From NCBI GenBank assembly GCA_028826165.1, contig JAPDFW010000070.1:1426001-1490000 (forward strand): 64,000 nt of DNA, given 5' to 3'. Numbering within the stretch: the stretch's first letter is position 1; every line of letters starts with the position of its first letter. The notes beneath the pieces were generated by a model. That model did no database searches. It was not told the DNA's origin and worked only from the letters and a program-made list of their open reading frames with translations. The translations under genes were made by a program, and so were the position numbers. The DNA comes from Anaeramoeba ignava BMAN. Its lineage: Eukaryota > Protista > Anaeramoebae. Below, one piece after another: positions 20,743-35,062 of the stretch.

Positions 20743-23700
20743 TTAATTATTTTCTCTTCTTTTTTTTTGATAAATTTTGTAACAAATTCGATATAAATGA
20801 ATAATATATTTTAATTTAAGTTCTTTAAAAAATTTTGTTAATCTTTGAGATAATGCATAATCTGGAAAACTAAATATATTTTCTGTTTCTGGATCATTTT
20901 CAATTTTTAAATTTTCAATTCTTTTTAATATATTTTCTAATATATTTTTTAATATATTTGATTCTTCTTCAAGAAATTTATTTACTTCTTTTTTTTGTTG
21001 ATGTGAAAGATGTTTTTAAATTTTGAATGAACTTTTCACAAGGATCAATAAAATATTCTAAAAGTGTTTTATATAAATCAATTAATTCATTCATTTCTAT
21101 ATTTGCAAAATTTGGGCATTCATTAATATAATGTTTTATAATTCCAAATAAAATGGAATGAATAAATTTTGGAATTTGATTTTCAATTTGTTTTCCAATT
21201 TTTTTTGTTGTAATAATTGTTTTAATATTAAGATTTTTCCATTTATTAATTTCTTCTTCTTTTTAAATTCTTTTTTTGATAAAAATTCTATCAGAATAAC
21301 AAGATAATAAATAGAATTAGGTAATATTCTAAAGTGTTCTAATTCTTGAATAATATCTTTTCTTAATTTATAACTTAATTTATTTTGTTCAAATTTATCT
21401 TTTTCAAATTTATTTTTGATTTGGTTTTAATTTTTCTTTTTCAATTTTCATTGTTTTTCTCTTCAAATTTGATGATTTAATTTGTAATTCTTGAAATTTT
21501 ATATTTTTGAATTGATCTTGAATAAAATTTTCAATTAAATGAAGTGATGAAATTTCTTCAATTAAGTTTTCTTGAATAAATGAATTAATTTCATTTTTTT
21601 AATTTCTAAAATTTTTGGAAATTGTTGTTCATTGATTAATTCAATTTCTTTTTATAAGAAATTTGGAAATTTGTTTGATGGAAAATTTTCTTTTAATATT
21701 TTTATCATTTTGTTATATTTTTGAATGAAATATCCAAATATATTTAGAAATGCTTTTAGTTTCATTAATTTCTTTTTAATTTTGTTTGAGGTGAAATTAA
21801 TATTAATTTTTCATTTGGTTTATATAAATAATATTGATTCCAAACATAACAAAAATCTTCACAATAATATTCTTTAAATTTTGGTTGTTTACAAAATTCA
21901 TCAAGTGTTGTTTTTGATAAATATATTTCTTTCTTGTTTTCATTTTCATTTTCATTTTGATTTTCATTTTGATTTTCATTTTCATTTTCACTTTCATTTT
22001 CATTTTCATTTTCATTTTCATTTTCATTTTCATTTTCATTTTCATTTTCATTTTCATTTTCATTTTCATTTTCACTTTGATTTTCACTTTGATTTTCACT
22101 TTGACTTTGACTTTCACTTTGACTTTGACTTTCACTTTCACTTTCACTTTCACTTTCACTTTGACTTTGACTTTGACTTTCACTTTCATTTTCACTTTCA
22201 TTTTCATTTTCACTTTCATTTTCATTTTGATTTTGATTTTGATTTTGATTTTGATTTTGATTTTGATTTTGATTTTGATTTTGATTTTGATTTTGATTTT
22301 GATTTTGATTTTGATTTTGATTTTGATTTTGAATTTGATTTTGATTTTGATTTTGATTTTGAATTTGATTTTGATTTTGATTTTGATTTTGATTTTGATT
22401 TTGATTTTGATTTTGATTTTCATTTGATAAAATAGTTGATTTTAAATTTAAATTTAAAATAGAAATTCCTATTTTAAAAAATGTTATAAGTTTTGAAAAT
22501 ATTTCAAATAATTCTTGATTTCTCATATAAAACCATGTTATTGGAAATTCTTTTTTGATTTTTTCATTTTCATTTTCATTTTCATTTTCATTTTCATTTT
22601 CATTTTCATTTTCATTTTCATTTTCATTTTCATTTTCATTTTCAAATAATAAAATTAAAGAATTAATTCCTATTTTTGGAATAGAATTCCATATCCAATT
22701 TTTTGGTAATTTTGTTGAAATAATTTCATTTTGATTTTGATTTTGATTTTGATTTTGAATTTGATTTTGTATTTCTCTTTGTATTTGTTTTGTATTTTGT
22801 TTTTGATTAAATTTTTGAATAAATTTCAAAACATCTTCTAATTTTAAATCAAATATTTCAATTAATTTTTCTAATTCATTTAAAATTTCATTAAATATTA
22901 TTTTTTGAATTTGAATTTGAATTTGATTTTGATTTTCATTTTCATTTTGATTTTCAATTTCATTTTGATTTTGATCTTCATTTTGATTTTGATTTTCAAA
23001 AAATTGAATTAATTTAATAAATCTTGAAAATCTTAAAAATATAATTTTTTGTTCTTTTCTTAAAAATATTTTTTTTCTTTTTCTTTTTCTTTTTCTTTTT
23101 CATTTTGATTTTGATTTTCATTTTGATTTTGATTTTGATTTTGATTTTGATTTTGATTTTGATTTTGATTTTGATTTTGATTTTGATTTTGATTTTGATT
23201 TTGATTTTGATTTTGATTTTGATTTTGATTTTGATTTTGTTCTTGTAATTTAGAATTATATATTTTAAATAATAAATCTTTTTCATTTTTATTATTTTGT
23301 AAATCAATTCCTGCTTCATTTTTGAATTTGTTTATCAAATTTTTGATATTATCAAATTGTTCTGTTTTTTCTTGATTTATTAAAAATAATTCAGATCTAA
23401 ATTTTGTAATTTTTTCAATTTGATCTTTAATTTTTTCATTATTTTTCTCAATTTCTTGATTATTTTTGTTAACTTCTTCTTTAATATTTTGATAAATTTT
23501 AGTTTTTATTATATATCCTTTTCTTTTTGATTTTGAATTTCATTTTTGAATTTGATTTATTTTATATTCAAGATATTTTTCAGCTAAAATATTTGAATGA
23601 GAAAGTTCATTATTTAATTTTATATTTTTGATAGTAATAGATTAATAGATATTTCAATCTTCTCTAATTCAAATACAAAAACTCTAATAATATCTTTTAC

Positions 23701-32700: not shown

Positions 32701-35062
32701 TATTTTTGGAATAAAGATAATTTTGATTGAATTTTTTAATAATTTCTTGATCAATTTCTTTGAAATTTTTAATTTCTTCATTAATTTCTTTGAAATTTGT
32801 TTTTGGAAATATTTCTGTAATTAAGTTACTTAAATTATCTTGAATAGAATCTTCATATTTCTTTAATTCAAATGTTTTGTTTTCGATTTGATTTTTGATT
32901 TTTTCAATTATTTGAAAATCTTTTGATAAATGACTGAAAGGATTTCCTTTATATTTAGGTTGAAATTCATTGTTCATATTAATTAAATAAATCCATATTT
33001 TCTCAATTTTTGCTTCTTTAATTTTATCAAATTTATTAAGAATAAAATCAAATTCATTTTGATTTTGATTTTTTTGTTGATTATGATCATAATTGAATTT
33101 TAAGAATTTCTTTTTATTATAAACTTCTTCCCAAGCTTTTATTTCAATTTCTTTTGGAATTTTCTGTAAATCATCTTTATGAAATGTTGTTTGAATTAAT
33201 TTTTCAGAATAAATATCAATAACGAATTCTTTGAAAACATTAATAAAATAAGGAAAATTTTGTAATATTTGTTTTGAAATAATATGTTCAAAAAATGATT
33301 CTGATTTTGGATTTAATTTTGATTTTGATTTTGATTCTGATGTTAAACTTTTAAGATGTTTTTTAAGAAGAGAAATAATTTTTTCTTTTTCTTTTTGTTG
33401 TTTTTTTTTAATAAATAAAGAAGAAAGAGGTTTCCAAATATCAATAAATTTTTCAATATTATCAATTTGATTAATTTGTGATTGCATTTTATCAATAATT
33501 TTAATAAAAAATTGATGAGGAATTTCATTTAGATTATTAAATAATTTATTCAAAATTTTTAATAATATTTGATAAGATTGTTTTGTTATAGATAAGTATG
33601 TATCAATAGATGAAATTAAATTGGATTTTGATTTTCTTTCATCTTCATTTTGATTTTCGAAGAAAAAGAATGTTAATAATTTTTTAAAAGATTCATTTGA
33701 TTTTTCAATATCTTCATTGGTTTCATTAACTTTAAGTTTATAAGAAATGAAAATGGGTAAATATTGAATAATAATATCTTCTGAAATGTTTGAATCAGTT
33801 GATATTTTTTCAAATAATGATTGGAAAATATCTTTTAATTGTTGTTTAATTAATTCATCATAAATTTTTCCAAGTTTTGTTGATAAAATTTTATTAGTTG
33901 TATCTGGAATATATTCTTTTTTCATTAAAAAAAGCATTTTCAAAATTTTGAATTTATCATTTTCAGTTTCATAATTTGAATAAGAATCAAAAAAATCTTT
34001 AATTATTGATTCATCAATTTGTAATAAATTTATATCTTTTTCAAATTGAGAAAGAATTTTTGATGATTCGTTATTGAATGAAATAAGGATATCAAAGAAA
34101 ATTGATTTTGGCTTTTGATATTTTTCAGATCCAAATTCAAAAAAAATATTTTCATTTTCATTTTTGGAAATATTTCTTTCAATTTCATCTATATTTCTTT
34201 CATTTTCATTTTCATTTTCAATTTTATTTTCATTTTGAATTTCATTTTCAATTTCATTTTGATTTTTATTTTGATTTTCAATTTCATTTTCATTTTCATT
34301 TTCATTTTCATTTTGATTTTGATTTTGATTTTGATTTTGAATTTGATTTTGATTTTGATTTTGATTTTGATTTTGATTTTGATTTTGATTTTGATTTTGA
34401 TTTTCAATTTGATTTTGATTTTGATTTTCATTTTGAATTTGATTTTGATTTTGATTTTGATTTTGATTTTGATTTTGATTTTGATTTTGATTTTGATTTT
34501 GATTTTGATTTTCATTTTGATTTTGATTTTGATTTTGATTTTGATTTTTTGGAATTATTTCGAATTGAAAAATAGAATCTTGATTAATTTTATCAAAATT
34601 ATCAAAATACCAAATTGATGGATTTAATTCTTTATGTTGATTCATTTCAAAATTTTCATAAATCTCAATATAATTTTCATTTTCATTTTGATTTTGATTT
34701 TCATTTTCATTTTCATTTTGATTTTGATTTTGATTTTGATTTTCATTTTCATTTTCATTTTGATTTAAATTTTGATTTTGATTTTCAATTTCATTTTCAT
34801 TTTCATTTTCATTTTCATTTTCATTTTGATTTTGATTTTGATTTTGATTTTGATTTTCAATTTGATTTTTTGGAATTCTTTTTTTGAAAATAATTTGAAC
34901 TGTTTTTTCTTGTTGATTGATAAGAGAAGGATCAACAAAAAGGTAAATAGTTTTTTGCTTTTTCTTCTTTTTTTGCTTTTTTTCTTCTTTTTCTTCTTTT
35001 TCTTTTTCTTCTTTTTCTTCTTTTTTTTCTTTTTCTGAGTTTTGAATATTTTTTTGAAACAT
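20743..35062 (-). CDS. Giant RNF213/mysterin-like dynein-type AAA+ protein (~4,600 aa), split by many homopolymer frameshifts in this assembly
   Basis: RNF213-type motifs in order: SKFSSSGKT; GLPVIIFGETGCGKTRLI / IFDEFNT / SLRD; RIPLFMIGKPG^TSKSLS (intron 27417-27789 inside the Walker A); QCSP..TS; LLDELALAE..PLKVLH; GISNW; FFGLRDFY; RNFGG; LYDVLNQ; LNRFEKQ; CTD-like end. ATG at 35062, stop near 20743. Confidence 0.85.
27430..27785. repeat. (TTTA)n microsatellite filling the RNF213-like intron
   Basis: Visible tetramer array between GT (27789) and AG (27417) on the minus strand. Confidence 0.95.

Follow-up and report, generated by a model that had tools for sequence, protein, structure and literature searches.

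Does the giant AAA+ gene that lies in a stretch of the Anaeramoeba ignava genome still encode a protein? The stretch in question, 64,000 nucleotides in length and hereafter called the window, has 17-19% guanine plus cytosine (GC) and carries at 20743-35062 of its minus strand an RNF213-like gene that runs from an ATG at 35062 to a stop at 20745-20743. RNF213 (mysterin) is known as an animal immune ligase, its RZ finger is where ubiquitin is passed to lipid A, and Anaeramoeba is an amoeba that keeps Gram-negative symbionts. A first-pass annotation, made from the letters of the window, had proposed a working zinc-finger-less sensor or remodeller that uses a ligase in trans, with particular interest if the host were Anaeramoeba, which it is. 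We put a probability of about 0.8 on a different reading, in which the locus would be a recently inactivated, unprocessed pseudogene of an RNF213-like giant AAA+ gene, one of three such copies.

An RNF213-type core in a broken frame

Inspection of the minus strand reveals 22 stop-to-stop pieces in changing frames rather than one open reading frame (ORF) with gaps, a state of affairs that the first-pass annotation had understated, and no single continuous coding sequence for the ~4500-5200 residues is present. Each piece was searched separately, with no joined or frame-corrected protein used; the later searches and scripts took in the locus except 24934-24995, and the piece 24966-24658 was searched from 24933 on. 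The sole long open frame is the N-terminal arm (30929-35062, minus strand), which begins at the ATG and runs for 1378 codons, abounds in NQ/NE repeats, and gives tblastn matches to paralogs on C70, C1, and C128. The AAA3 piece (28222-29565, minus strand) has intact Walker A (GETGCGKT) and Walker B (FDEF) motifs and matches Pfam AAA_5 and AAA_7. The AAA4 module (25692-27420, minus strand) is distributed over two frames, 27420-26827 and 26867-25692, and keeps its Walker B motif, LLDE. Beyond it, the post-AAA region (23063-25701, minus strand; 8 pieces) occupies the place of AAA5/6, the hinge, and the E3 (ubiquitin ligase) module, and the end of the gene resembles the C-terminal domain (CTD) of RNF213 (20746-23099, minus strand; 7 pieces with nine 1-nucleotide indels and a long NQ/NE/SE repeat).

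Searches of the PDB place the core firmly. The AAA3 piece retrieved RNF213 chains, representing nine distinct sequences with E values from 1e-31 to 3e-30, followed by NSF at 0.05, and the piece 26867-25692 was recognized by phmmer as the RNF213 AAA4 region at E 1e-17. Midasin and dynein rings share the Pfam AAA_5 and AAA_7 matches; in contrast to the nine RNF213 sequences, no midasin or dynein chain was found at E<=1 with the AAA3 or AAA4 pieces. Because AAA3 and AAA4 match RNF213 alone among PDB chains at such values, the AAA core is of the RNF213 type, as the first-pass annotation had it, and the locus is a genuine member of the RNF213-family ATPases, neither a midasin nor a dynein.

The second Walker A motif is recovered across an intron. 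Removal of a 373-nucleotide, phase 1 GT..AG intron (27417-27789, minus strand), which is filled with (TAAA)n and splits the AAA4 Walker A motif as GKPG|TSKS, restores that motif, and AAA3 and AAA4 are then each present with both Walker motifs. The intron position is kept in the sister copy C60b (336 nucleotides) and in the paralogs C109 (68 nucleotides) and C64:1109219 (81 nucleotides), and matching donor sites are found in C120 and C57. Its retention identifies this copy as unprocessed. The intron is almost wholly a (TAAA)n/(TTAAA)n microsatellite and ranges from 68 to 373 nucleotides among the paralogs.

The C-terminal end was also identified as proposed. All three motifs that had suggested a CTD (WIWNS..KI, TLDEF..F..VWN, and FPDYAL) are found, within pieces 23099-21768 and 21015-20746, and the region that bears them aligns with the CTD of RZ-bearing A. 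ignava paralogs with a profile-profile probability of 96%. The sister copy, which has a single 701-codon frame over this region, matches the RZ-bearing paralog on C70 at E 1e-5. In the PDB search, the C-terminal pieces of the locus gave no direct match to human RNF213, only low-complexity noise. The C70 paralog itself matches human RNF213 at E 7e-14 over its RZ finger and ~160 residues beyond, and weakly at its far C-terminus, such that homology to the RNF213 CTD is established via the paralogs.

The coding chain carries frame changes and stops

Along an uninterrupted path of homology, the locus presents 16 frame changes that no usable intron bridges, at least one further break near 25087, and three in-frame stops. 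GT-AG introns were considered as the cause of the breaks and rejected except for 27789/27417: 12 of the 16 frame changes have no GT-AG join, and the remaining four allow only a few joins, which would delete homologous sequence. At the breaks, the homologous match with both the sister copy and the clade profile carries on without loss into the next frame. A private frameshift at 28230-28240 (minus strand) provides an example, where this copy lacks a single base that both sister copies have and the sequence ...NRALK continues in another frame as IWSFLMNF. The in-frame stops, all on the minus strand, are a TAA at 24655-24657, where the sister copy has TAT, a TGA at 23540-23542, where the sister copy has a sense codon, and a TAA at 21652-21654 beside a 1-nucleotide indel. 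Fourteen stops fall within the 250-residue CTD match.

Three young copies diverge beside a constrained gene

The gene lies in an inverted duplication. One arm occupies window positions 19073-34707 and the other C60:1505285-1489350, which starts at about window position 63350; the arms are ~15.6 kb in length, ~95% identical, and arranged head to head about a spacer of ~28.6 kb. Both arms carry an intact F-box-LRR gene at their outer ends and a decaying RNF213-like gene. A third copy, which is the closest match in the assembly to the AAA3 piece, lies at the very start of contig C113 (C113:1-7100) and is truncated past AAA3; a fragment of 516 residues from it is listed at NCBI as hypothetical protein M0811_12134 [Anaeramoeba ignava]. 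The three young copies (this one, C60b, and C113) are ~3-5% diverged. Hexamer repeats encode the NQ/NE/SE runs in the coding frame (21937-22425, 22910-23239, and 34198-34869), and these repeats make up most of the in-frame length difference between copies.

Comparison of this copy with its inverted twin reveals 95% identity over 14.2 kb and 85 indel runs, 43 of which are not a multiple of 3; among the copies, the frame-breaking share of indels is ~60%. Measured against the sister copy, the ratio of non-synonymous to synonymous substitution rates (dN/dS) is 1.17 for the half as far as AAA4 and 0.96 for the half beyond. A three-way comparison with C113 over 6.3 kb of the N-terminal half is star-like, with private counts of 95, 101, and 82 for substitutions, 10, 9, and 16 for frame-breaking indels, and 6, 9, and 8 for in-frame indels. 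The lesions differ between the copies, and every copy has an open frame at places where another is broken. By these measures, the divergence of the locus from both sister copies is neutral.

Duplicated in the same event, the F-box-LRR gene (19066-20710, plus strand) serves as an internal control. Its two versions, one in each arm, differ by no indel over 1.65 kb and by 1.15% substitutions, with a dN/dS of 0.068. This clean, constrained neighbor argues that assembly error is unlikely to account for the lesions next to it. The marks of an unprocessed pseudogene, namely disabling lesions, neutral divergence, and a constrained flanking gene, are thus found together. That is to say, the frame changes, stops, and neutral evolution at the locus, set against the constraint on its neighbor, speak against the working sensor or remodeller that the first-pass annotation had proposed; the untranscribed pseudogene, which it had named as an outcome that would overturn its proposal, is very likely in its pseudogene half.

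Weighing the explanations

We favor the following sequence of events. The ancestor would have been a member of a small finger-less clade of about ten A. ignava loci, which we call clade B, and would have kept the N-terminal arm, the CTD, and a motor of six AAA modules in which the AAA3 and AAA4 sites look active. The middle region of this ancestor would have been shorter and unrecognizable, with neither RING nor RZ. A block of ~15.6 kb holding the RNF213-like and F-box-LRR genes would then have been duplicated in inverted orientation, with a third copy on C113. After duplication, all three RNF213-like copies would have drifted neutrally and gained private frameshifts and stops, with the F-box-LRR gene meanwhile held by purifying selection. 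On this account, the lesions are probably real rather than assembly errors, and a full-length protein is probably not made from the locus.

Several observations weigh against this account. The lesions are known here from the assembled sequence alone, and the published assembly was built from R9 Nanopore reads with Racon, Nanopolish, and two rounds of Pilon at a minimum depth of 5 (PMC11550330), a combination that can leave indel errors in AT-rich DNA. A dN/dS near 1 is by itself weak evidence, and two other young paralog pairs give 0.53 and 0.95, with 0.13 for a distant pair. In addition, the AAA3 and AAA4 Walker A and B motifs are intact and the 1378-codon N-terminal frame is open, from which it follows that inactivation would be recent and that a truncated product is possible. 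The assembly method, together with the intact motor motifs and the finding that about half of the 1-nucleotide indels lie in A/T runs of 5-8, are what an intact and functional finger-less RNF213-like ATPase would have to rely upon, with its frame breaks dismissed as residual Nanopore errors in extremely AT-rich DNA. We consider this improbable. Nine of the 28 indels of 1-2 nucleotides lie in no homopolymer run, and at least two of the in-frame stops arose by substitution. At the break density of this gene, ~4-5 indels would be expected across the two arms of the F-box-LRR gene, which has none, and other paralogs in the same assembly hold open frames of 12 kb. The same neutral pattern recurs in all three copies. 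Since errors would have to be confined to the three RNF213-like copies and would still leave the stops by substitution unexplained, the locus is read as recently dead.

A truncated product would sidestep the broken frame: the 1378-codon N-terminal arm, by itself or together with AAA pieces, might regulate intact paralogs or serve as a decoy of them, or the transcript of the locus might itself be regulatory. The N-terminal frame is far longer than expected by chance in DNA of 17% GC, and the annotated protein fragment of the C113 copy points the same way; in contrast, the N-terminal arm has a dN/dS of 1.5 against the sister copy, with no sign of constraint, and the sister copies are broken at several places in the same region, which makes a retained function of this kind quite improbable. 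Far more improbable still is a decoding of the breaks, for example through programmed frameshifting, RNA editing, or introns of a non-canonical type. The continuation of homology across every break is the sole observation in favor of decoding, whereas the very places at which this copy breaks are open in the sister copies and vice versa, the breaks have no common sequence context, and the TAA and TGA stops are of the ordinary kind that ends the other genes here. A recently inactivated pseudogene remains our preferred reading, and most likely the locus has no function at the protein level.

Zinc fingers are absent from the locus and its clade

The first-pass annotation had reported no Cys/His cluster, RING, or RZ finger, and each further search agreed. 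In the three minus-strand frames from 27420 to 20700, no stop-free window of 50 residues holds five or more Cys plus His, and over that interval the 2337 residues of the coding chain include 13 Cys and 20 His. Pfam finds neither RING nor RZ at E<=1 in any piece. Six-frame scans of the genome for the RZ-type zinc finger (PF20173, E<=10) and for RING (PF13639) return 8 and 135 places, respectively, none of them in the window or the sister copy. By these measures, the locus has neither a RING domain nor an RZ finger. An exact look-up of ten ORF pieces in a collection of 15 billion proteins found none.

The family to which the locus belongs is large. Searched in six frames with the AAA3 piece, the assembly gave 98 matches, and the family occupies at least 90 places with an AAA3 match. 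An AAA-core phylogeny had been suggested as a check, and a tree of AAA3, in which the broken copies C60b and C120 were joined with X at the break, places the locus beside animal RNF213: all A. ignava loci group together and adjoin the animal sequences (support 100/99). Within the tree, an RZ-bearing clade (99/96) stands apart from the finger-less loci, clade B is supported at 100/99, and this copy forms a tight trio with C113 and C60b (100/100). CTDs of the clade-B type occur at about ten places in the genome (480-residue query).

The paralogs of clade B (C57:298834, C64:1109219, C109, C126:933297, C120, C64:679141, and C12) are homologous to the locus over its whole length, including the finger-less post-AAA region, have the AAA4 Walker A intron in common, and show no Cys/His cluster. 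With a profile seeded from the last 1313 codons of C64:1109219, all C-terminal pieces of the locus can be aligned, as can C57, C126, C120, C109, and C64:679141. Neither a Cys/His cluster nor a Pfam finger is found in any of five clade-B loci (C57, C64:1109219, C126, C120, and C109). Stops are carried by this copy, C60b, C113, C120, C126, and C136; unlike the locus, C57, C64:1109219, and C109 have long frames and look intact. Open frames in other paralogs of the same assembly reach 2900-4182 codons. The description of the locus as a zinc-finger-less RNF213 variant thus holds as regards the missing fingers and fails as regards its singularity: the loss is common to a whole clade of paralogs, not peculiar to this gene.

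The RZ-bearing paralogs provide the contrast. The copies on C70 (C70:179954-192499, with a 4182-codon frame) and C128 are intact, have long open frames, keep an RZ finger (Pfam, E 1e-16), and fall in a separate clade; RING is likewise undetected in them. A small CxC...CxCC cluster lies ~420 residues upstream of the RZ finger in these paralogs (C70:177000-186999 and C128:105000-114999), roughly at the place of the animal RNF213 RING, and Pfam calls no RING there. Just downstream of the C128 paralog, on the opposite strand, is a small RING-type match (C128:113840-114049, minus strand). BLASTP and phmmer searches from C70 reach only the AAA5/6 part and the far C-terminus of clade B, and profiles with hhalign were used beyond that. 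Two blocks align between the RZ-bearing clade (A) and clade B: AAA5/6 (A 199-565 against B 60-375) at a probability of 98%, and the CTD (A 1384-1882 against B 829-1306) at 96%. Across the stretch between them, which holds RZ at about A 1161-1205, nothing aligns by hhalign, and this stretch is ~365 residues shorter in clade B than in the RZ-bearing clade.

Neighboring genes do not supply a ligase in general

A ligase in trans was considered in the form of linked genes. Directly upstream of the start of the RNF213-like gene lies a BTB-BACK and TLDc gene (35841-37309, minus strand; Pfam BTB 3e-24, BACK 8e-14, TLD 8e-17), and the clade-B paralog on C109 has an RCC1-repeat and BTB gene directly downstream (L023:8024-9907). 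Among the loci checked, E3-adaptor neighbors occur only at C109 (RCC1-BTB) and at this block, with F-box-LRR downstream and BTB-BACK-TLDc upstream. The other checked loci have SNAPC3, CENP-K, Omp85, importin-beta, or RabGAP genes downstream of them, or ORFs without a Pfam match. Given that the neighbors of most checked loci are not E3-related, being housekeeping genes or lacking a Pfam match, linked genes were rejected as the source; the first-pass proposal of a ligase in trans receives no general support, and the case for one supplied by neighbors is weak.

Implications for the RNF213 family in Anaeramoeba

The locus can be compared directly with animal RNF213 (PDB 6TAX, 7OIK, 8S24, and 9JW1). 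AAA3 and AAA4 are 35-45% identical over ~260 and ~160 residues, respectively, the Walker motifs occupy the same two modules, and the order of N-terminal arm, AAA ring, middle region, and CTD is shared. In contrast to animal RNF213, the locus lacks RING and RZ, its middle region cannot be aligned, and its frame is broken about twenty times, such that no full-length protein is expected. As a decaying copy, it adds little to the story of the family and is a poor candidate for experiments. It also carries a warning, as annotation splits such relics into "hypothetical proteins".

The intact relatives are of greater interest. Clade-B proteins would have two ATP sites and a CTD with no catalytic finger, and for want of that finger they could not transfer ubiquitin as RNF213 does. 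The most parsimonious guess is that they would serve the RZ-bearing paralogs as an ATP-driven scaffold, partner, or decoy and would not be ligases themselves. A broader view, which we hold only tentatively and consider rather unlikely, is that clade B forms a working class of RNF213-like motors whose intact members (C57, C64:1109219, and C109) have lost ligase chemistry and serve as ATP-driven scaffolds or decoys alongside the RZ-bearing paralogs, with the dead triplet a product of immune-type birth-and-death turnover. If this is true, the locus would be the footprint of an arms-race family and not a player in it.

No paper linking RNF213 to Anaeramoeba was found, and the A. ignava genome paper makes no mention of RNF213 or ubiquitin. 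The RNF213 family itself is known; a finger-less RNF213 clade in a protist is new to the literature. With AAA3 matches that number at least 90 and a well-supported finger-less clade, in an amoeba that keeps Gram-negative symbionts, the family is worth describing, and the value of this locus lies in the evidence that it offers of rapid gene birth and death within that family.

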